The position numbers and the translations under genes are program-made. A stretch of 62,034 nt of DNA, the filler included, from Trichosphaerium sp. ATCC 40318 (Eukaryota; Protista; Tubulinea): assembly GCA_038496445.1 (NCBI GenBank). It is 4 parts of 4 records of this genome, joined end to end, with 100 filler letters (N's around TTAATTAATTAA, not from the genome) between each part and the next. Parts side by side here need not be neighbours in the genome. Positions count along the whole stretch, not along the records: positions 24,022 to 39,300 come from JALMLS010000184.1; 3 more parts are not named here. One strand, written 5' to 3'. Below are positions 24,022-39,300 of this stretch, piece by piece. How positions within the stretch are numbered: position 1 is the first letter of the stretch; every line of letters starts with the position of its first letter. The notes beneath the pieces are model-generated. The model was not told where the DNA came from, ran no database searches, and saw only the letters and a list, made by a program, of their open reading frames with translations.

Positions 24022-25441
24022 ATTGCTGTTTGTATACAATATTGAGCATGATTTCCATACCTGTAAAAAAGAAACAAACAATTAAAAGTTGACTGTTGTG
24101 TGTATGGCTGCGTTGAAAAAAGTTGAAATTCAAATGAACCGAGAGTATTTTTCTTATGAACCCGCCAGTATTTAATAAATATTGGTTGTTTACATAAAAG
24201 ACTCAAACACCCCATGTTGTATGCTTTGATGAATTGATTTTGTGCTCGCACAGTTTTTTTTCTTCACTTCTTTGCTCCCAAATCCACTATGTTCCTATGA
24301 ATTTCATGACCTCTTTAGGTTTGATTGATGTGTTCCACGATGTATTGTAGTTCGGATTGGTTGTTTGGAATTGTGCAACAAGTTGTTTTTTCTTCTGTAT
24401 GGTAACACGTGATTCCAAATGTTTTTTTTTATTAAACGTTTAGATAGACTTGTTTTGTAGGTGAGCACACTGTTAGATTGAATGCGCTCAAAATAACCCA
24501 AGTTAGGGCCTGATATTTAAACACTCTGGTAGCGATATCTTTGCGTCTGGGAGAACCTTACAGTATTTTCAGTCATGTAGTTCAATTTTTCTTGTAGATT
24601 GGTCAAATGTTTCTGTTTATTGTCTAGTTTACGTTTTTTAGTTGCTGCACGTATTGAAGTACGGTTTGTACACGGCACCACAGGTAGGTACTTGAAAAAA
24701 TAACGAAACAAGTATTGGTGGTTTTACAAAAATCACGTGCGTGTAATAAAATAAAAACGCTTCGTAACAATTCCTCTGACCAGTAAACCGTGTTATGCAG
24801 CCCTTTCTGCCGTAAATGCGTTAGTCTTGTTTCAAACTTGTTGCCACCTCCACTGCGAGTTGCTCATTGTACAATAGCGAATACGTGACATATAAAAATC
24901 AGCAGTGAAACCAGCATAGATAGAAAAACAAAAATAAAGAATAAAATCTCCGCCACTGAAACAACAACATGTTTTTACAACCGAAAAGATACGACAGCAC
25001 AACATTCTTGTATTTTGGCGTCCGGTTCTCGTTATTCTGTCTGGTTACAATAACAACATTATGATAATATCCTTTGTGCTTGCTTGTCGGGGTAAAAAAT
25101 AGCCCGAAAAAGAGTTCGCCACTTACGAGCAACAAAGTTGAGCGGGTATTTGCACTATTTGGTGAAATATTTGAAAAACCTGTGTTTCGATGAAGGTACA
25201 TGGCCTGTTTTGTCACCAGGTTGTAACTCCGTTTACTTAAATAAACAGATTGAAGGTCTCCAAGTGGTTAAAAAACTATTGTACAGGCAATCGCGTTCTT
25301 GTAGCGAATCAGTTAATTTCAAAAAAAACACAAAACCAGAACCGTAACACAAATTACAATAACCTTCACTGAAAAATCTTATGTATCAAGTGACACTAAC
25401 TTAATACTGCTTTGTGATAACTTCAAGAGTGACAACACGTC

Positions 25442-28400
25442 ATGACAGAATCACAGAGCGACAAATACCAACGTTTAGAAAAGAAAGAACCAACCAACAA
25501 CATCTATATCCCCATAATTGAAATTGTGTTTTCTTTTGCAGGTTTGTAATGCTTGCTTCGCAAATAGTTGACAAAGTTTAGCAACAAATGGCTACAATGA
25601 AGTTGTATCAACATTACTCAAAGCCAACGCCAATGTTGATGCTGTTGATAAAGATGGAAATACAGCTTTAATGTGTGCAGGTAACATGATATGATGAGAT
25701 ACAACATGTACATATCTCATTCCACTATTTAGCACAAAATGGATACGATGAAGTTGTATCAATCTTACTCAACGCCAATGCCAATGTTGATGCTGTTGAT
25801 GAATATGGAGATACAGCTTTACTATGTGCAGGTAACATGATGAGATACAACATGTACATATCTCACTCTACTATTTAGCACAAAATGGATACGATGAAGT
25901 TGTATCAACATTACTCAAAGCCAACGCCAATGTTGATGTTGTTGCTAAAGATGGATATACAGCTTTACTATGTGCAGGTAACATGATGAGATACAACATG
26001 TACATATCTCACTCTACTATTTAGCACAAAAAGGACACAATGAAGTTGTATCAATCTTACTCAACGCCAATGCCAATGTTGATGCTGTTGATGAAGATGG
26101 AGATACAGCTTTACTATGTGCAGGTAACATGATGAGATACAACATGTACATATCTCACTCTACTATTTAGCAATAAAAGGACACAATGAAGTTGTATCAA
26201 CATTACTCAAAGCCAACGCCAATGTTGATGCTGTTGATGAAGATGGAGATACAGCTTTACTATGTGCAGGTAACATGATGAGATACAACATGTACATATC
26301 TCACTCTACTATTTAGCACAAAATGGATACGATGAAGTTGTATCAACATTACTCAAAGCCAACGCCAATGTTGATGTTGTTGCTAAAGATGGATATACAG
26401 CTTTACTATGTGCAGGTAACATGATGAGATACAACATGTACATATCTCACTCTACTATTTAGCACAAAAAGGACACAATGAAGTTGTATCAATCTTACTC
26501 AACGCCAATGCCAATGTTGATGCTGTTGATGAAGATGGAGATACAGCTTTACTATGTGCAGGTAACATGATGAGATACAACATGTACATATCTCACTCTA
26601 CTATTTAGCACAAAATGGATACGATGAAGTTGTATCAATCTTACTCAAAGCCAACGCCAATGTTGATGCTGTTGATAAAGATGGAAATACAGCTTTAATT
26701 AAAGCAGGTAACATGATGAGATACAACATGTACATATCTCACTCTACTATTTAGCACAAAATGGATACGATGAAGTTGTATCAACATTACTCAAAGCCAA
26801 CGCCAATGTTGATGTTGTTGCTAAAGATGGATATACAGCTTTACTATGTGCAGGTAACATGATGAGATACAACATGTACATATCTCACTCTACTATTTAG
26901 CACAAAAAGGACACAATGAAGTTGTATCAATCTTACTCAACGCCAATGCCAATGTTGATGCTGTTGATGAAGATGGAGATACAGCTTTACTATGTGCAGG
27001 TAACATGATGAGATACAACATGTACATATCTCACTCTACTATTTAGCAATAAAAGGACACAATGAAGTTGTATCAACATTACTCAAAGCCAACGCCAATG
27101 TTGATGCTGTTGATGAAGATGGAGATACAGCTTTACTATGTGCAGGTAACATGATGAGATACAACATGTACATATCTCACTCTACTATTTAGCACAAAAT
27201 GGATACGATGAAGTTGTATCAATCTTACTCAAAGCCAACGCCAATGTTGATGCTGTTGATAAAGATGGAAATACAGTTTTAATGTGTGCAGGTAACATGA
27301 TATGATGAGATACAACATGTACATATCTCACTCTACTATTTAGCACAAAGAGGACACAATGAAGTTGTATCAATCTTACTCAAAGCCAACGCCAATGTTG
27401 ATGTTGTTGATAAAGATGGAAATACAACTTTAATGTGTGCAGGTAACATGATATGATGAGATACAGCATGTACATATCTCATTATACTATTTAGCAATAA
27501 AAGGACACAATGAAGTTGTATCAATCTTACTCAAAGCCAACGCCAATGTTGATGCTGTTACTAAATATGGAAAGACAGCTTTAATTAAAGCAGGTAACAT
27601 GATATGATGAGATACAACATGTACATATCTCACTCTACTATTTAGCATATAATGGACACAATGAAGTTGTATCAATCTTACTCAAAGCCAACACCAATGT
27701 TGATGCTGTTGATAAATATGGAAATACAGCTTTAATGTGTGCAGGTAACATGATATGATGAGATACAACATGTACATATCTCACTCTACTATTTAGCATA
27801 TAAGGGATACGATGAAGTTGTATCAATCTTACTCAAAGCCAACGCCAATGTTGATGTTGTTGATAAAGATGGAAATACAGCTTTAATATATGCAGGTAAC
27901 ATGATATGATGAGATACAACATGTACATATCTCATTCCACTATTTAGCACAAAATGGATACGATGAAGTTGTATCAATCTTACTCAATGCCAACGCCAAT
28001 GTTGATGTTGTTGCTAAAGATGGAAAGACAGCTTTAATTAAAGCAGGTAACATGATATGATGAGATACAACATGTACATATCTCACTCTACTATTTAGCA
28101 ATAAAAGGACACAATGAAGTTGTATCAATCTTACTCAAAGCCAATGCCAATGTTGATGTTGTTGCTAAAGATGGAAATACAGCTTTAATATATGCAGGTA
28201 ACATGATATGATGAGATACAACATGTACATATCTCACTCTACTATTTAGCACAAAATGGATACAATGAAGTTGTATCAATTTTACTCAAAGCCAATGCCA
28301 ATGTTGATGCTGTTGATGAATATGGACATACAGCTTTAATTAAAGCAGGTAACATGATATGATAAGATACAACATGTACATATCTCACTCTACTATTTAG

Positions 28401-31400
28401 CATATGATGGACACAATGAAGTTGTATCAATCTTACTCAAAGCCAATGCCAATGTTGATGTTGTTGATAAATATGGAAATACAGCTTTAATTAAAGCAGG
28501 TAACATGATATGATAAGATACAACATGTACATATCTCACTCTACTATTTAGCAATAAATGGACACAATGAAGTTGTATCAATCTTACTCAAAGCCAACGC
28601 CAATGTTGATGCTGTTGATAAAGATGGAAATACAGCTTTAATGTGTGCAGGTAACGATATGATGAGATACAACATGTACATATCTCACTCTACTATTTAG
28701 CACAAAATGGATACGATGAAGTTGTATCAATCTTACTCAATGCCAATGCCAATGTTGATGTTGTTGCTAAAGATGGAAAGACAGCTTTAATTAAAGCAGG
28801 TAACATGATATGATGAGATACAACATGTACATATCTCACTCTACTATTTAGCATATAAGGGATACGATGAAGTTGTATCAATCTTACTCAAAGCCAACGC
28901 CAATGTTGATGTTGTTGATAAAGATGGAAATACAGCTTTAATATATGCAGGTAACATGATATGATGAGATACAACATGTACATATCTCATTCCACTATTT
29001 AGCACAAAATGGATACGATGAAGTTGTATCAATCTTACTCAATGCCAACGCCAATGTTGATGTTGTTGCTAAAGATGGAAAGACAGCTTTAATTAAAGCA
29101 GGTAACATGATATGATGAGATACAACATGTACATATCTCACTCTACTATTTAGCACAAAATGGACACAATGAAGTTGTATCAATCTTACTCAAAGCCAAC
29201 GCCAATGTTGATGTTGTTGCTAAAGATGGAAAGACAACTTTAATGTGTGCAGGTAACATGATATGATGAGATACAACATGTACATATCTCACTCTACTAT
29301 TTAGCATATGATGGACACAATGAAGTTGTATCAATCTTACTCAAAGCCAACGCCAATGTTGATGCTGTTGATGAAGATGGAGATACAGCTTTAATATGGG
29401 CAGGTAACATGATATGATGAGATACAATATGTACATATCTCACTCCACTATTTAGCAATAAATGGACACAATGAAGTTGTATCAATCTTACTCAAAGCCA
29501 ACGCCAATGTTGATGCTGTTGATGAAGATGGACATACAGCTTTACTATGTGCAGGTAACATGATGAGATACAACATGTACATATCTCACTCTACTATTTA
29601 GCACAAAATGGATACGATGAAGTTGTATCAACATTACTCAAAGCCAACGCCAATGTTGATGCTGTTGATAAAGATGGAAATACAGTTTTAATGTGTGCAG
29701 GTAACATGATATGATGAGATACAACATGTACATATCTCACTCTACTATTTAGCACAAAGAGGACACAATGAAGTTGTATCAATCTTACTCAAAGCCAACG
29801 CCAATGTTGATGCTGTTGATGAAGATGGACATACAGCTTTACTATGTGCAGGTAACATGATGAGATACAACATGTACATATCTCACTCTACTATTTAGCA
29901 TATGATGGACACAATGAAGTTGTATCAATCTTACTCAAAGCCAACGCCAATGTTGATGCTGTTGATAAAGATGGAAATACAGCTTTAATATATGCAGGTA
30001 ACATGATATGATGAGATACAACATGTACATATCTCACTCTACTATTTAGCGTGTGGTGGACACAATGAAGTTGTATCAACATTACTCAAAGCCAACGCCA
30101 ATGTTGATGCTGTTGATGAATATGGAAAGACAGTTTTAATGTATGCAGGTAACATGATATGATAAGATACAACATGTACATATCTCACTCTACTATTTAG
30201 CATATAAGGGATACGATGAAGTTGTATCAATCTTACTCAAAGCCAACGCCAATGTTGATGCTGTTGATAAAGATGGAAATACAGTTTTAATATGTGCAGG
30301 TAACATGATGAGATACAACATGTACATATCTCACTCTACTATTTAGCAATAAAAGGACACAATGAAGTTGTATCAATCTTACTCAAAGCCAATGCCAATG
30401 TTGATGTTGTTGCTAAAGATGGAAATACAGCTTTAATATATGCAGGTAACATGATATGATGAGATACAACATGTACATATCTCATTCTACTATGTAGCAC
30501 AAAATGGATACGATGAAGTTGTATCAATCTTACTCAAAGCCAACGCCAATGTTGATGCTGTTACTAAAGATGGAAAGACAGCTTTAATTAAAGCAGGTAA
30601 CATGATATGATGAGATACAACATGTACATATCTCACTCTACTATTTAGCACATGATGGACACAATGAAGTTGTATCAATCTTACTCAACGCCAACGCCAA
30701 TGTTGATGCTGTTGATAAAGATGGAAAGACAGCTTTAATGTATGCAGGTAACATGATATGATGAGATACAACATGTACATATCTCACTCTACTATTTAAC
30801 ACAAGAAGGACACGGTGAAGTTGTATCAATCTTACTCAAAGCCAACGCCAATGTTGATGTTGTTGATAAATATGGAAATACAGCTTTGATTTATATAGGT
30901 AATCACAAATGAGATAAAAACTATGTTTATTTACTATCATTTGAGACTTTGACTATATATCAATGTTTATGTTGAAATTAATCAAACCTAATGCAAATAA
31001 TATTGATACTATTGATGAAAGTGAAACCAACAAGAATTCAGGTATTGGGCACATTACAAACAATTTGGTGAAATAATAGCTAACACTGTAAGTAGTAGTA
31101 ACTCCATGCCAAAGAAAGTGGCAAGACTTTATGTTCATTTTAATTAGAGAAGTGGTATCAAATACACCCTCAGCTGTTGAAAAATTCGTAACTTTCTTAA
31201 AATACTGTCCAAGTGGTAAACAATGCCATCCACTGTGGAGATACTGTAAAAAGCACTATTCGCAAAATGTCGACATAGAGGGGAGAAAACAGTTTGAAGA
31301 ATGGCTTCACCGTTTGGTACACTTTGCTGAATACCAATACCTTAAACTAACCATTACAACGTTTAGCCAACGCGGTATTATTTCAAACTGGCAATGGAAA

Positions 31401-33397
31401 AAGGTATTTGTCATTTAATTTGTTCCGCATGCGATCCCAAAGTTGTACTGTCTCCGGTACGATATCTTCACTGCTAGCATCTACACTACAAACAACATTC
31501 TTTTTCTACAGGAATTCTGGAAACAAGATGGGCAATCAATGCAAGGTATTCTGCATGATATGCCCAATGATGCCTGGGTCAATAACAGTCAAGATGAATC
31601 CTTAAAAGAAGAGTGTACTGAAGGTAAGAAGCGTGGTGATATAATACTAAAAAAAGTTTTCAAAAGGATTAAAAGGTGAAAACGCGTGGAGCCTGAATCC
31701 GCGATTGTATTTTGCAAATAATTGGGATAGATCTAACACGTGCGTTCAATTACTTTTTATTAGTTCTAATATTACAACAAGAGGCATTGTTGCAAAGGCG
31801 ACACACTACAAAACACTGAATCTGCTTGATGACAACGACAAAGTGGCAGTCAGAGAATTCAACATCCTCAAACAGGAGATGTCAAAACTACATGGCTGTG
31901 ACAATTACGAAATCATTGAAGCGACTCTCGTTTGTAATGACATCTTGACAGAAAACTTTGGTCGAATCAACGAAATACTGACGCACAGACATCAGTACGG
32001 TTGCTCCACACTTCATAGGCATTTCCGTGATTCTAAACATGCATCTATTAGAGAACTGCCCAAGTTGTTTAAAAAACAAAATTGGCAAACTGATAGTACC
32101 TACAAGGAATACAAAGAGACTGTGTACCAAAAGTGCAACGCCCTCACTGCTTTTAATGATTGTTATACTGAAAAAAAAGATAAGGTAATGTTCTTGGTAC
32201 TCTTGCACTACAAACATTTTATTTAGTTACCAGTGATATTGATGGTCCATGGAACAACCGAAGAAGCAGCTAAGAGTATTGTAAAGGCTGGTTTTGGAAC
32301 TGTGAGTTCTTTAGACGCTGGTTACTATGGTCAAGGGATATACTTCACTGTACGTTATTACCCAATTATTGTAGGTGGTCAATATTCATTTTCGGCAATA
32401 GAGAAGCATAAAGTATGCCGCTTCATATGATTTAAAAGGAACAACTTCAAAAACACTGGTTTTAAGTCTTGTTACTCCTGGGAACGTTTATCCGGTAAGC
32501 AAACAATAATATTGATGTGGATATTCTTTGCTTACTTGATGATAAAAAGCATGATCCCCTTGTATGTAAAAATACTGATGAGGGTACCAAAACCATGAAT
32601 GAAAGCTTGCACGGAAGGCCAATAAAACCAGGCTACCAAAGTCATTATGCATTGGTAGACCACGCTGGTAAACTTCTGCCAGCAGATAAACTTAAAGATG
32701 CAGTATACGATGAGCTGGTAGTGGCACAAGGTACACTCAGCAATACAATTGAAAAATGTGATTAAATTCTCAAACACTATTTTAGATACTCAAGCTGTTG
32801 CTCGGTACATCATCAAAGTTACAAACAAACATAAAAAAAAACGTAAAACTTCAAAAACCAAGAAAGGTAATAAAAAGACAAAGAAAGAGAAAGATCAAGC
32901 TTCAGAAGTAGATACTGATGGCTCAGCTGGCGAGCTATCTGATGATGAACTATCTGATTCTGACGACACTTTTATTTCTAACCGGTATAATTTTATAGTA
33001 TCTTTTAAACTTAAGTTTTGTTACTAGAAAACTGTGGGCTGCCCATGATGATTCAACTGATGATGAACAACCAAGTTATAATTATGCCAATCTCAAACTA
33101 GAATTACAAGAATCAAACAGCGAGGTAGAGGAACTGACGAAGAGCCTGGCTGAACTTCATCGGAATTCACAGAAAATGAATGCAAATAAAGAACAGCACA
33201 TTACTGAATTGACTGAAAGCATCAAAGACCTCACAAGAAGCAACAACACCCTAAAGCTAGACAATATCAACCTCAAAGAAAGCGTCAACTACCTCTCCGA
33301 AGGTGTCCATGATCTAATGCGAGACAACACTAGCCTAAAGGAGAAGAATGCCATTCTACTGGCAAAAATAGCTCTCCTTGAAAGTACAGCAAAGTAA
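25442..33397 (+). CDS. Ankyrin-repeat (36 single-repeat exons) plus PARP-type ADP-ribosyltransferase plus acidic/coiled-coil tail
   Basis: Exon 1 25442-25541 splices in phase 1 into 99-nt exons (A.NGY.EVVSILLKANANVDAVDKDGNTAL.CA); degenerate cap exon ~30946-31041; ART motifs MVHGTT (His 32248-32250), YYGQGIYFT, KYAASY, LVLSLVTPGN, YDELVV, RYII; stop 33395-33397. One junction near 31080-31150 not resolved. Confidence 0.85.
25582..30898 (+). repeat. Tandem exon-intron array: 36 units of 99-nt exon plus 47/50/52-nt intron (146-151 bp period)
   Basis: Intron GTAACATGAT(ATGAT)GAGATACAACATGTACATATCTCACTCTACTATTTAG repeated 35 times almost unchanged; exons counted unit by unit. Confidence 0.97.
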
Positions 33398-34067
33398 TTC
33401 TAATGCATCTGTTGTAAACAAGCAACGTTTATCAATAAACAATCACAGTTTAGTTTTCCTCACAAATTGTACTTTGTTTCAAATTCATGGCCAATAACTT
33501 GTTTTGGCGCACTGAAGATAAAGGATACTTATAAGTGCAACGTTCAATTGTAATTTGTTCAACTTTGGAAGGTAAGAGGTGTATGCTGTAGATAAAATAA
33601 CACTGCTTGGTTGGTTTTAAAAAAAAGTGCTGAGTCGACTTTCACTGATTACACTGACCCAACATGTTGGTACATATGTAACGGAGTAAAAAAAGTGTCT
33701 TCCTTGACACTAACACAAGATAAGCTATGTAAGTAAATCAAGATATATTCGCTTCTAACAGATCAATTAATCTGTAAGTCAAAGTTGTTTTCTCCTCTTA
33801 TTAACTTTGTTTCTACTTAGTTGTAAAATGCATTCCTGTCTTTTTTATTTGTATGGAACAATCATGTATGAGTGCCAGTACAAGTCGTAACAATCCTCAC
33901 CTAAGAAGTACAACAAAACAAAATGTACAAGGTTATTGTTCAAATTGTAAAGCGTCTTAAAGCCCGGTTCACGGTTTTAGTTTTAGGATCCTACATGTAC
34001 CAAGGCGACTCCAACTTACTCCACAAGCTAAAGTAGTTTTTTAGTGCTCGAAAAACGCACGTGCGTT

Positions 34068-34520
34068 TTATGAAAACCAGAGTGGAGAAATTATTATTAT
34101 CGTCGGATTCTATGCACTGATACATGTTGCATTAGTGTGCAAAGAATCAGTGCCAAAATCGGTCTGGTAAGCCAGAAATTTTTACTTTTTTGTAGATTTT
34201 TTGCTTCAAAAACGAAGAACTTTTACATTTCTCAAAAATTGAAAATACGCGTATTGACATGTTGGTGTACTGTGTAAAAAAACAGAGCTGAACTTGACCG
34301 TGGTTGCCATAAATGTTACCTTTCTTATTTTTTTCTGGAAATTTTTTTGTGATAAAACGTGAGGTAAGTTCTTCGTTTTTGAAGCAAAAAATTGACAAAA
34401 AAGTAAAAATTTCTGGCTTACCAGACCGATTTTGGCACTGATTCTTTGCACACTAATGCAACATGTATCAGTGCATAGAATCCGACAATAAAAATAATTT
34501 CTCCGCTCGGGTTTTCATAA
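34068..34520. mobile_element. Fold-back/MITE-like element with ~155-bp inverted repeats
   Basis: 34068-34222 is the near reverse complement of 34366-34520 (e.g. GCACTGATACATGTTGCATTAGTGTGCAAAGAATCAGTGCCAAAATCGGTCTGGTAAGCC); degenerate extension to ~34033/34547; no TSD established. Confidence 0.75.
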
Positions 34521-34859
34521 TGGTTTTTCTGAAATCAAAAAATCTACAATATACAATTTCCTACTTTTTAACACATGTTAGTTCCTCACCACTTGTACTT
34601 GGCTCAAAGAATTGTGAACAACTGGATTAAAACAGTAAAAAATTACTTTCGGTACAAAGTACTTTACCAGATATACAAAATAAGTAGATGGCGTGAATTA
34701 GCGAGCACGCTTATATCAAAAGCCTGTCTATTCCTTGTACACTATCTCGTTATTCACCTACTAATTTCGGTTTTGGCTAGCCAACCAATGGCAGATATAG
34801 TACATTCTTTCATTCTTTTTGGTTCTCTTTTTCTTATTTATGTACTGCATGTACTTCTA

Positions 34860-35705
34860 AATACAGAAGCTTGTGATGGAGGGGATAACCCTTTGAAGAG
34901 TGATTGCGTTATATGGAAGTGTGAAAACGTCAAAGACTACGAACAACAAAGTGCATCTTTTTGAAACTACCTTCTGGAACACGTTCTTTTTTGCGAACCA
35001 GGTTTTTCGCCAGGTTGTCAACATCTTTGTATTGTACTACTAACGGTCTGTTATACTAACTTCATAATGTAGCGTGATAGACCAGGTAGAAGTCCTGAAG
35101 ATCTCAGAGAAAGCTATCTTCAATCATCCTTGAAGCGGTTTCCAAACTGTGTATGTTCTATTTAGTGTAACACCATTCTTACTTTGTAATTTATAGCCAT
35201 ATGCAGCCCAGAGAGGTTCTTTGTAATCTCAGCTTGCTTGAAAATAGCACAAAATACGATTTTCCAAGGTTGGAACTAGCTCTCATTAATTACGCACCAG
35301 CTGTACGAAAAAAACTAGTGACAAAGTTTTAATAGAAAGATGTTTAGGCAAAGTGAGAAGCGATTTTAAACGCAATACAAGGTTGCTCTCCAGAAGCTAT
35401 TAACTTAAAAGCTAAACTATGTTATGACAGGCTGCCAATATACGTGCTAATGTCTGGTTTGACTAGCGCAGGTTCTTCTGCTATACCTTTGACATCCTTT
35501 TTGACTATACCCGCCAGTGCAGCTGCAGACTGCATTCCAGACTATGTCTAAAATGGTGCTATCATTTCTACCCATCATTGGACCTGTATTATCTGGATCA
35601 ATGAGCGCCTCAATCACATACTTTGCGGGAAGCACATACATCACGCAATGTATTGAGCTTTGCAAAGTGATGAGAAGATTGAGAATGCAAAGAGAACATA
35701 TGTAG
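34860..35705 (+). pseudogene. Degenerate gene with DUF697/YcjF-like small-residue hydrophobic C-terminus
   Basis: SAGSSAIPLTSF and LSFLPIIGPVLSGSMSASITYFAGSTYI lie in different frames; stops upstream. Confidence 0.3.
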
Positions 35706-38700
35706 AAAAGTTGCTAAATAAACTCTATTTTGTATTGTTATTATTTTCAGGTTCTGTGCCTTTAGTAGCAGGTTGCAACAGAAGATGGCTTATCATCGTA
35801 CAACAACTATGTTAACAATGGAGGAATACTTAAGCGATTGTTCATTGCTGTTTACAAAGCAAGCGTGAATAGAAACGCATTGAGCGTTACAAAAGATACT
35901 GATCTATTAATTGTTATATATATATATATGTACGTATTGAATGTGAGTCTAAGCGAATTGCGTGCATTGTATCATCATATGCCAAAGTTCCGTTCAAATC
36001 AACGTATCCAGTTATCTTTTGTTCAAACTCTAGAAAACAAAATCAAAGAAAAGGCAAAGAATCCTGTAAAGAAGCCTCCACCTGTAAAGCGTACAGGAAA
36101 GAAGTTTGTAATGAAAAAGCCAAAACCTGGTGGCGGCGGTATGAGCTTCCTCGGCGAGCTTAAAAAAAAGTGTCAACGTCTGGCAAACTTGGTGAGATTA
36201 CTGGTGATACTCATGGTTGCGAATCTTGGTGAAAGAAATATTATAAAAAAGGTAAAGGACAACTTTGGTGGAAAAATTAACAATATCTTCCAACAGGGTG
36301 CCTTTTAGCTTTTGGGAAAACTCAAACCATTTTTGTATTTGTTTGCTTGATACTATTTGGACTATGCATCGAACAAAAACGAATTTCAAAGCCATTAGGA
36401 GCATGCAGGACTTAAAAAAAGAATGTGCATGGTAACACCAACAAAATCTCACATTTTTAAATGGTTTAGCAGATTACAGATTTTGTTGAAGAGTTTCTTA
36501 GCCTTTGGCTTTGCCGTACTGGACCACGAACACCTTTAATTCAATACAATTGAATATTTTTTTTACTTCACGGTCGCATAGCATGTGCAACCAAGTAATA
36601 TTTCTATCTGGTTAGAAATGATACCAGTTATCTATTTAACTTATATTAATATTGTAGGTGACAGTACTGTTGATTATGCGTCTTTGAGTGTAGGGAAGTG
36701 GTCTTGACCGCCTTTAAGCTAGACTCCGTATATGAGTAATCCTATGAGGTTAGTAGTAAATAATTTCTTACCAGGTAACGGATCTACGATAAAAACTTAG
36801 CTACTTTATGTTGGAAGGGAAAATAACTCTACCTAATGTTTTGCAAATATCCCAACCATACTTGCATCATTTTTCACGAATCAAACGGACTGATGGTGTG
36901 CTTCTTACATATCTATTCGCGTTTGATTCAAAAAAAAAATTGATCACGTGCTCGCAAGGTCGAAAAAAAAACCAGGTGGGACACTGCAATCAAACCTAAG
37001 GAAGTTATGAAGTTTATAGGAACAATGTGGCTTTGGGAGCAAAGAAGTGGCGAAAGAAATTATAATGATGTTATTTAGCACAAAAGGAAAACCACATCCA
37101 ATTGGTTTGATGATCTATGTACAAGCTCTATTCTGAGACAAATATGGTAAAAAGCCTTACTGGGGTCGCAGCCAGTTTCTCCTGTAGATGCTGCAAAAAA
37201 ATTGATTCTAAAATTTGAACAATAAAATAAGTATGGATTCGAGATTCATGGAGAAATGTGATTCTTGTACAAAAGTTACAGAAGCACGCGCTCACGTGAC
37301 CCCAGAAAGGTTGAAAACATCAAAGTGTGCTTTTAGAAAATTGCAAAACAATAAAGCACATATTAGAAGTAGTTTGAAATTTGTTTGACATACGCCAAGC
37401 GTTTGTAGTACTGATGTAATTTATCTACTTTTGTCCAGCCTGGGAATTATGATTGTTGATTCCGTACACGCGATATCTACTCAAAGGAAATACATAATGC
37501 AAAACTAGTTCTAGCGTTTGCACTATGACCATGTGCCTTCATTATTAAGCAGTACACAATGAAAAGGAAACCTGCAATATGAACGGAAATGTTCGATTTA
37601 TGCCATTTTTGCTAACCTGTGAGTACTCCAATGCGTTGTTTTACGCGTAAGGAAACGTTTTATAATACTCGTTGTCCCAAACTAGGTGCCATTACAGTTA
37701 TTAATAGAGAACCAACCGCAAGGTAGTATTGTATATTGTAGACGTCTGTTGAACAAGGAAGGTCAAAACGAGAACACCAACACGCTAGGAGAGTACATTC
37801 ATCGTATTTTTGTCCAATATCAGTGCAGTTTGAAACCACGATTGTTACACTGAAACGAACGATAGACCTAGTTGGAGCTTTGGCACGGCAATTGCCAGCC
37901 CGCTCCTATATTCTACTTGCATTACGCGAGCGATAGATTTACATCCGTTGCTGGCTTATGCAAGGAGAGGCGCCTATTTGTGTGTTGAAACTAACAAAGT
38001 GATAGCTCTAATTGAAGCTTTCGTACAGAACATCACAGCGTTCGTTTGCCATAAAACTACTCGCCCTTACGCAAACTGTGTTTACGTAATCAAAAAACGC
38101 ATGTTTGCAACGTCACAATAAAACAGCTCACAAAATTATTCGATGGTTTGAGGGAGCCTTTTTCAAAGGATCGCTCGCTGGTGCTTTGTCAGTATGATGG
38201 CGAAAAGAATAAACCACAACGGAGCTGCACGAGGTAACAGTAAACCCTTATCACCTACGAATGGGATACCTCTACAATAAAGGCTAAACAGAGTTCAAAC
38301 CAATACTCCTATATTGTTGCAGCGTAGTTCTTTCCTCCACACAAGAAGCAAAGTCATGCTTTTTCTTTAGCGGTAGTTTTTTTGAATTCTTTCTCAATAA
38401 AATTAGTTGCTTTTCAAGTTACTACTAGGTCTTTGCTCAGTAAATTCATCTTTCTACGCCGTGCGAAATAATGTAGTAGCTATCAGCCAAAGCGTATCTC
38501 GCCACGCCAAGACGATAAGGTTGCTAAGCACAAGTACTCTAGCAGAGAATACACACATTCCGTGCGTGTACAAGTAAATTAACTTTGGTCGCTCCTGCAT
38601 TGCACTATACTGGTTATGTTCTTATTGCATCGTCCCATACTTTGGATGTTATAGCTTTTAAAAAGTTCGCTGTTAGTAGACAACGACTAGCTAGACTTCC

Positions 38701-39300
38701 TGTGCCCAGCGATCAACAGTTTTTGTGCGTCTGTTCTTGTCTAGGCTATTTGTTTTTAGAAAGTCTGTGGACTTTTAACACTACGTTTATCCTCTGAATT
38801 GTAGTAGATTGCGCGTTAACTTGGTAACATAGTTAGAAAAGTAACAAGAGAAATCAAATCTAACATTTGTCACATTCGCTCAGTGTTCTTTGAAATCAGA
38901 CTTTAGTCGTAGTTTTATTCCTAATTAGTGCTATCGGTACTGCAGCTCTCCAATTGGATTGAAAAAAACCGCCTAGCACACTAGGTATTCACATCCTAAT
39001 GTACCTACCCGCAAAAAGGCATCGACAAAAATGTAGACATTTTGACATGTGTCAAATTTTACGCAATTTTGGCTTAACATAACATCAAGTGTAACGTGAA
39101 GCCTAAAAATACGCATCATTGAAAGGAATAGGTTTGTTTTATACATGAGATTGTATTATTTGGTTTGCAAAAAAGACTTTGTACATCAACAAATACAGAC
39201 CTTTCGCTACCTCAGGTGTTAGCAGTGCTGTAACTCACGAACGAAATACAGAAAAAAGGAGCCAAAAGTGAAGTCTAATGTAAGCGAAATCGTAGTTTTA

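Follow-up and report, generated by a model that had tools for sequence, protein, structure and literature searches.

A single ankyrin-PARP gene of Trichosphaerium sp. with 36 one-repeat exons, uniform in framework and diverse at predicted contact positions

Analysis of a window of 62,034 nucleotides (nt) from the genome of Trichosphaerium sp. ATCC 40318 (GCA_038496445.1), the window being the whole stretch of four joined parts with filler between them, led to a gene of 49 exons at 25442-33397 on the plus strand. It lies in the part derived from JALMLS010000184.1 (24022-39300, approximately 36% G+C), and its coding sequence of 5,571 nt encodes a protein of 1,856 amino acids (aa) without any internal stop. 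In the protein, a short N-terminus is followed by 36 consensus-type ankyrin repeats, a degenerate repeat 37, a helical linker of approximately 215 aa and a PARP-type domain, downstream of which there are a basic tract, an acidic tract and a coiled coil of approximately 120 aa. No signal peptide was found in the predicted protein of 1,856 aa. As far as can be read from the sequence, it is well supported that the ankyrin array and a probably active PARP-type transferase are encoded by one gene. It is also well supported that the array evolves by homogenisation together with diversity maintained at the predicted contact positions. On balance, we lean towards the reading that this is one ankyrin-PARP (ANK-PARP) gene, with a homogenised array whose binding surface is kept diverse and which serves as the specificity module for an ADP-ribosyltransferase (ART).

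Tandem Repeats Finder reported a single array at 25577-30887 (period 151, 35.6 copies, 91% matches), and a search for the donor motif located 36 sites at spacings of 146, 149 or 151 nt. Parsing by these donor sites confirmed what an earlier note on this DNA, made from the sequence alone, had described: 36 exons, each encoding one ankyrin repeat of 33 aa. Every one of these exons measures exactly 99 nt, and they run from 25582-25680 to 30800-30898. All of them are in phase 1-1, the two leading bases of every array exon completing the codon begun by the last base of the previous exon. The 35 introns of the array are 47 nt (13 introns), 52 nt (21) or 50 nt (1) long and represent nine sequence variants with a mean pairwise difference of 0.018. 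The 36 exons comprise only 28 distinct sequences, since multi-unit blocks of 519, 368, 360 and 345 nt (two to three and a half units) recur as exact duplicates. Searches for reversed or intronic copies of the ankyrin exons, and for copies in the flanks, found none. Intron 35 (30748-30799) ends with TTTAA and not TTTAG, leaving exon 36 (30800-30898) without a canonical acceptor in the assembly. Spliced evidence was drawn from Logan contigs of three public runs (X1, X4 and X6), 90-99% alike and placed on 30640-33450. One X1 contig among them has the joint 30747->30800 (GT..AA) and is possibly paralog-derived. Skipping of exon 36 would preserve the reading frame, and the exon may be skipped, unusually spliced or inactivated. 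The earlier note was right about the number of units and had missed this AA-ending intron, the degenerate repeat 37 and the reduction to 28 distinct exons.

The array exons have a mean identity of 89% at the nucleotide level and 78% at the amino acid level (range 61-100%), and nearly all of the differences fall in 14 codons. Proportions of nonsynonymous (pN) and synonymous (pS) differences were obtained as Nei-Gojobori counts over all pairs of units within one gene copy:

14 variable codons: pN 0.26, pS 0.127
19 framework codons: pN 0.004, pS 0.035
All 33 codons: pN 0.121, pS 0.064

When all codons are taken together, the pN/pS ratio comes to 1.9, and pN exceeds the intron distance by a factor of 6.6. 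The framework values and the intron difference given above agree with the description in the earlier note of a nearly invariant framework and nearly identical introns, and the pattern is far from what chance would give. Many of the variable codons differ at two or three bases (e.g., CAA/ATA/TAT and TGT/AAA/TAT), and non-singleton variable sites amount to 26 out of 99 in the exon versus 3 out of 52 in the intron (Fisher P = 0.002). The four-gamete test found all four combinations at 347 of 561 informative site pairs, some of which are only 1-6 nt apart. Variable sites are thus reassorted almost freely, and a simple duplication tree therefore fails as an explanation. The pattern calls for homogenisation of introns and framework, combined either with selection for diversity at particular codons or with a very local process of conversion or mutation. 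Uniform introns and framework, along with exact block duplications, are the expected product of unequal crossing-over and gene conversion.

The register of the repeat was fixed by the gapless alignment of a single repeat exon to designed ankyrin repeat proteins (DARPins; best E = 2e-29). In DARPin numbering, the variable positions rank by entropy as 5, 14, 13, 10, 9, 17, 1, 16, 32, 2, 7, 22, 25 and 3. All those listed in the earlier note were recovered with the same residues, and the four that it had overlooked are 7 (A/V/T), 22 (I/T), 25 (K/N) and 32 (A/V). DARPin libraries, as Binz and colleagues are said to have reported in 2003, were randomised at positions 2, 3, 5, 13, 14 and 33. These six positions hold 43% of the amino acid entropy of the array against 18% expected (permutation P = 0.0036), in line with the earlier placement of the variation on the DARPin-randomised, helix-1 face; position 33 itself is invariant in the array. 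The positions of the beta-turn and the exposed helix-1 face (1, 2, 3, 5, 9, 10, 13, 14 and 33) hold 67% of the entropy, 9 and 10 having been assigned to the groove face from helical periodicity. By the DARPin register, the beta-turn positions 1, 2, 3 and 5 and the helix-1 positions 9, 10, 13 and 14 would form the concave ligand-binding face. Spliced contigs that come from paralogs or relatives have additional residues at the variable positions, namely K or W at 13 and H at 10. In the homolog L001, the five best-registered repeats are most variable at positions 5, 13, 16, 14 and 17.

Concerning the PARP-type domain, the exons of the gene were searched against Pfam one at a time, and the score and fold of the full domain were taken from homologs. 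The exon at 32227-32349 alone matched PF00644 with 20 bits (E = 5e-4). When a 134-aa piece of the window served as query, exhaustive HMMER searching yielded only two relatives above 50% clustering, P0001 and P0002, both from one JGI transcriptome sample, and a homologous-protein search with a 134-aa window piece as query gave no match. The PF00644 scores of P0001 (36.5 bits) and P0002 (30.9 bits) both exceed the gathering cut-off of 26.7, and P0002 is 54% identical to the gene over 613 aa. Compared with PDB, a profile of seven family members matched PARP12 best (2.8e-8), followed by PARP10, ZAP, PARP4 and PARP15, and in its alignment to PARP12 the third triad position falls on the Glu of DELVV. 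The HGT and GIYF motifs at 32227-32349 and the DELVV motif at 32550-32730 occupy the triad positions, and the H-Y-E triad recognised in the earlier note is intact in the gene. Among 39 aligned relatives, Tyr and Glu are invariant, while at the first triad position 29 have His and 10 have Gln; the gene has His. The AlphaFold2 (AF2) model of P0002 residues 1-470 reaches a predicted local distance difference test (pLDDT) score of approximately 90 over the catalytic part (residues 170-425). Foldseek with this model returned tankyrase 1 as the best match, with a template modelling (TM) score of 0.72-0.74 and E = 5.7e-10, and then PARP1, PARP4 and PARP12. Alignments and homolog model together support the prediction of a PARP-type transferase with an H-Y-E triad and ART fold.

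Pfam showed no SAM, WGR or PARP regulatory domain (PRD) in the exons of the gene or in P0001 and P0002, and therefore the gene is neither a tankyrase nor a clade-1A ANK-PARP. The designation "tankyrase-like" in the earlier note holds loosely, in that ankyrin repeats precede a PARP domain. It does not extend to the SAM domain, which is absent, to the organisation of the repeats, which is different, or to the nearest sequence relatives, which by profile are PARP12, PARP10 and ZAP. No NACHT or NB-ARC domain was detected by Pfam in any exon or homolog. The top PDB matches for the 41-aa exon at 32227-32349 were TAL effectors (E down to 7e-9); these were rejected as an artefact and not homology, as a weak match to LPVLCQAHGLT is summed across many TALE repeats. 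Separately, the 585-aa family member P0003/L004 from a Logan run has, N-terminally, a partial second set of PARP motifs and so hints at a PARP-PARP tandem.

Array and PARP domain share one open frame through GT-AG introns. All splice sites of the 49-exon gene are canonical apart from the acceptor of exon 36, and outside the array the GT-AG introns measure 40-57 nt. The contigs of the three runs show 11 of the 13 junctions outside the array, and repeat-to-repeat junctions are present among them as well. The array is linked to exon 37 because frame and phase are compatible and because two homologs carry both parts. Specifically, L001 is a 2.6-kb transcript scaffold with at least seven ankyrin repeats followed by the PARP part, with only a gap of 10 N between its two open frames, and P0007 has the Ank and PARP Pfam domains in a single open reading frame of 540 aa. 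The coupling of array and PARP domain that the earlier note had proposed is thereby supported, in one open frame in the gene and on one transcript in the homologs. Its exon model downstream of the array had to be corrected. The present model of that region was built from two lines of evidence, the GT-AG joints in Logan contigs and the alignment to transcript-derived homologs, and the features of the gene are as follows:

25442-25541, plus strand: exon 1, start codon and 33 codons, phase-1 end, donor GTTTGT
25582-30898, plus strand: ankyrin array, 36 exons of 99 nt each, phase 1-1, introns of 47/50/52 nt
30946-31041, plus strand: exon 37, degenerate ankyrin-like capping repeat of 32 aa, 96 nt, phase 1-1 (frame, splice sites)
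31093-31316, 31367-31456, 31512-31623 and 31667-31739, plus strand: four linker exons (contig joints or ends, P0002 alignment)
31782-31994 and 32052-32184, plus strand: two exons of the N-terminal PARP-type domain (alignment to P0001/P0002, contig joints)
32227-32349, plus strand: exon with two NAD+-site motifs, HGT (His) and GIYF (Tyr) (Pfam PF00644, PARP12 alignment)
32402-32494, plus strand: PARP-domain exon with conserved YA and PGN motifs (joint 32349->32402 in X4, alignment)
32550-32730, plus strand: PARP-domain exon with PGYQSHY and DELVV, the latter with the triad Glu (alignment to the third triad position of PARP12)
32786-32984, plus strand: exon in which the PARP domain ends, with Lys-rich and then acidic Ser/Asp tracts (joints 32730->32786 and 32984->33028)
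33028-33397, plus strand: last exon, coiled coil of approximately 120 aa (many weak coiled-coil Pfam matches, conserved in P0001/P0002)
33395-33397, plus strand: stop codon TAA (translation)
33434-33439, plus strand: AATAAA, candidate polyadenylation signal (sequence motif)

The ATG of exon 1 is the first ATG past in-frame stops, and loose ends of spliced X1 and X4 contigs carry the sequence of the exon 1-exon 2 junction. Exon 37 is similar to the last degenerate repeat of L001. The linker exons align to residues 2-165 of P0002, and this region of approximately 165 aa ahead of the catalytic part is helical in the AF2 model, with low confidence; a Pfam scan of the linker exons matched no family. 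The joints 31739->31782, 31994->32052 and 32184->32227 are present in runs X1, X4 and X6, and the model region that corresponds to the exons 31782-31994 and 32052-32184 has high pLDDT. A loose contig end matches the start of the exon that follows 32402-32494, and one X1 contig has its end at 33448 and continues into sequencing adapter. An exon model drawn from open frames alone was rejected on account of the spliced contigs and the P0002 alignment, which revealed four errors in it. The start is at 31093 and not at 31150, the exon 31667-31739 was added, an intron at 31317-31366 is followed by a change of frame, and there is an in-frame intron of 57 nt at 31995-32051.

Around the PGN motif (32495-32600), the gene has an insertion of 13 aa compared to the family, and its donor site falls where the family has the conserved Val after PGNxYP. 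The X4 contigs differ at this place, one of them joining 32494->32600 and another 32494->32550, a difference that may be due to paralog variation or alternative splicing. Right behind the catalytic domain, at 32824-32960, a Lys-rich tract resembling a nuclear localisation signal is followed by the acidic Ser/Asp tract. Both are kept in P0002, and they may point to nuclear or chromatin localisation. As for the surroundings of the gene, the flanks 24022-25441 and 33398-39300 are free of long open frames, of ankyrin exons and of paralogs; the approximately 6 kb downstream are seemingly non-coding or hold genes with very short exons.

The PARP module of the gene belongs to a wider subfamily. A degenerate-pattern scan of metagenome contigs detected 141 loci with relatives at 26-47% identity, which have GYYGQGIYF and PGYQSHY as common motifs. 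Where their open frames are longer, the PARP module is C-terminal, behind varied partner modules such as leucine-rich repeats (LRR):

LRR: L028, L034, L047
Roc-COR: L031, L036, L024
Ras/Roc and LRR: L072
Kelch: L022
SUEL lectin: L019
TSP1: L012
FG-GAP and calcium-binding EGF, in proteins of 1,000-3,000 aa: L013, L015, L020, L027, L029

The metagenome loci of the subfamily (L006-L085) are environmental eukaryotic transcripts, and about a quarter of the members have Gln for the triad His. More distant relatives, at 22-33% identity, were found in metagenome-assembled genomes of Chlamydiales, Rickettsiales, Verrucomicrobia and Gammaproteobacteria (L087-L096) and in one IMG/VR viral contig (L086). 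The bacterial ones may reflect exchange between protists and intracellular bacteria. The exact DNA pattern of the exon framework had no match in the JGI metagenome contigs. By analogy, the combination of many binding or sensor modules with one enzymatic module fits a sensor-effector reading of the present gene and is its main circumstantial support.

According to the mechanism that we propose, unequal crossing-over and gene conversion would homogenise the introns and the framework codons and duplicate blocks of units, while approximately 14 codons stay diverse and are reassorted in nearly every combination. The long ankyrin solenoid would then act as the specificity module, its binding surface being under pressure for diversity. 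It would deliver bound targets to the ADP-ribosyltransferase or activate that enzyme, and the coiled coil would make the protein oligomeric. That the diversity is adaptive and that the protein acts in recognition or defence is plausible. Somewhat more tentatively, the gene may belong to a setting of conflict or surveillance, for example against viruses or intracellular bacteria, because of the pattern of repeat evolution, the sensor-type partners of the module and its kinship to the antiviral mono-ADP-ribosyltransferase (mono-ART) PARPs. The immune role suggested in the earlier note was an analogy, and its one support is the occurrence of the PARP subfamily behind many sensor-type modules in other eukaryotes.

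Several observations weigh against the reading of a diversified specificity module. Synonymous differences are raised at the variable codons too (pS 0.127), and old variants preserved by selection are therefore indistinguishable from localised mutation or micro-conversion. The selection signal derives solely from repeats compared inside one gene copy, and the statement in the earlier note that the module is being diversified has the same within-gene comparison as its basis. Variable positions 22, 25, 32 and 7 lie off the predicted binding face, and the amino acid identity of the repeats (78%) comes near but stays under the criterion for highly conserved repeats in fungal NOD-like receptors (NLRs), i.e., at least 85% identity over at least 100 aa (PMC4986451). 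The copy number comes from the assembly, and exon 36 is without an AG acceptor. None of the contigs examined spans the junction of this gene's array to exon 37, and since the contigs are 90-99% alike, many of them stem from paralogs or relatives. The PARP fold and Pfam membership were shown on homologs, because the exons of the gene were searchable only singly. Finally, no NOD/STAND or other signalling module accompanies the array, and the Lys-rich tract is equally compatible with a nuclear or chromatin role.

The last point also suits a different explanation, which we regard as rather unlikely: the gene could encode an ordinary scaffold-type ankyrin-PARP enzyme that recruits fixed cellular substrates in the manner of tankyrase or the clade-1A PARPs, its repeats inflated by tandem exon duplication and its variable codons representing tolerated surface. 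Exact duplications of 345-519 nt, which make copies of 8 of the 36 exons, do speak for very recent amplification, and PARPs have come to carry ankyrin repeats on two or more independent occasions for non-immune functions (PMC2964712). The Lys-rich tract and the coiled coil would fit a chromatin or structural role, and some variable sites are indeed off the binding face. However, relaxed constraint is incompatible with introns differing by 1.8% and framework synonymous sites by 3.5% next to 14 codons with a pN of 0.26. Codon differences of two and three nucleotides, the enrichment at ligand-contact positions (P = 0.0036) and the reassortment of variable sites down to 1-6 nt apart argue in the same direction.

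Little credence is given to an assembly artefact in the length and order of the array, with near-identical units of 146/151 nt collapsed, expanded or chimerised. Near-perfect tandem repeats over 5.3 kb are hard to assemble, and the exactly repeated blocks (C-D-E, C-D and K-L) can stem from mis-joins. Yet the differences between units are structured by codon, the frame is open through all 36 exons, and independent spliced contigs from three runs have the same kind of repeat joined exon to exon; such an artefact could alter the number or order of the units, but not the nature of the locus. It is very improbable that the gene is decaying or has lost its function within a larger ANK-PARP family, with the expressed transcripts in the runs stemming from its paralogs. 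The AA end of the intron before exon 36, the 13-aa insertion after PGN with loss of the conserved Val after PGNxYP, and the similarity of only 90-95% of most contigs would be in keeping with decay. They are set against 49 exons that stay open over 5,571 nt with splice sites canonical except one, an exon 36 that can be skipped without effect on the frame, intact triad residues, and contigs of at least 99% identity (11 in X1 and 9 in X4). A bolder and likewise improbable possibility is that the locus is a generator of diversity, in which combinatorial splicing or somatic recombination would give rise to many ankyrin solenoids that differ in their binding grooves, each with an ADP-ribosyltransferase. 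All 37 repeat exons are symmetrical and have near-identical introns, and any subset of them could therefore be skipped or re-joined in frame. In a related variant, the repeats may read an extended polymer (e.g., an unfolded peptide) unit by unit, with a code like that of TALE or PUF proteins.

If our preferred reading of a homogenised array with a diverse binding surface is true, the design of a uniform scaffold with hypervariable contacts and repeat shuffling, so far documented for the repeats of fungal NLRs and for the LRR and tetratricopeptide repeat (TPR) exons of brown algae, would come to include a third repeat type as well as another lineage and another output. With no NOD switch in between, that output would be direct ADP-ribosylation. 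The PARP subfamily with the PGYQSHY motif is a candidate for a signalling or effector module in the surveillance systems of protists, and the 28 distinct natural repeat variants on a fixed framework form a data set for the engineering of ankyrin binders. Our literature search found no account of a comparable ANK-PARP gene.

Among known systems, fungal NLRs have highly internally conserved ANK, TPR or WD repeats that evolve in concert and are under positive selection at positions of the concave face (Dyrka et al., 2014, PMC4986451). The present gene resembles them (Podospora het-e/het-d/NWD) in its near-identical within-gene repeats, the shuffling of repeats and the attached effector domain. 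Hypervariable positions in the fungal proteins are on the inner helix and beta-hairpin of the ankyrin concave face; here, too, most of the variation lies on the predicted binding surface, and nonsynonymous change exceeds neutral change in the within-gene comparison. It differs from them in having no NACHT or NB-ARC domain and in an effector that is C-terminal and of PARP type. Moreover, the fungal arrays are continuous coding sequence, whereas here there is an exon per repeat with a homogenised intron, and the host is a marine protist-like eukaryote and not a fungus. In Ectocarpus, LRR and TPR genes with an exon per repeat have been proposed as immune-receptor candidates (PMC3341825; PMC11378527). 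With these the gene shares one symmetrical exon of constant length per repeat (36 x 99 nt), possible signs of exon duplication and shuffling, a possible inactivated exon and variation at predicted ligand-contact residues, and relatives of its PARP module are fused to LRR and Roc-COR. Its ankyrin exons are of 99 nt in phase 1-1, in contrast to 72 nt for LRR or 126 nt for TPR exons there, its introns are tiny and near-identical, and its output is an ADP-ribosyltransferase instead of a GTPase or NB-ARC.

There were at least two independent gains of ankyrin repeats among PARPs (Citarelli et al., 2010, PMC2964712). Tankyrases (PARP clade 4) and the clade-1A PARPs with an ANK-WGR-PRD architecture also bear ankyrin repeats N-terminal to an H-Y-E PARP domain, and tankyrase 1 is the best structural match of the catalytic domain as modelled on P0002. 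However, their 15-18 repeats are diverged, as opposed to 36-37 near-identical ones here, and the sequence profile of the present family, with its own PGYQSHY signature, is nearest to PARP12, PARP10 and ZAP. The gene is probably a third, independent ANK-PARP fusion. PARP12, ZAP/PARP13 and PARP10/14/15 are the closest solved sequence relatives and share the order of a recognition module followed by a PARP domain. These antiviral mono-ART PARPs carry CCCH zinc fingers, WWE or macro domains in place of ankyrin repeats, and the catalytic Glu is mostly absent from them (H-Y-I/L), whereas H-Y-E is retained here. Finally, of the six positions that are randomised in DARPin libraries, five (2, 3, 5, 13 and 14) vary in the array, three of them being its most variable ones. 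Unlike in DARPin design, position 33 is invariant, positions 1, 9, 10, 16 and 17 vary as well, and the diversity lies between the repeats of one natural protein and not between the members of a library.

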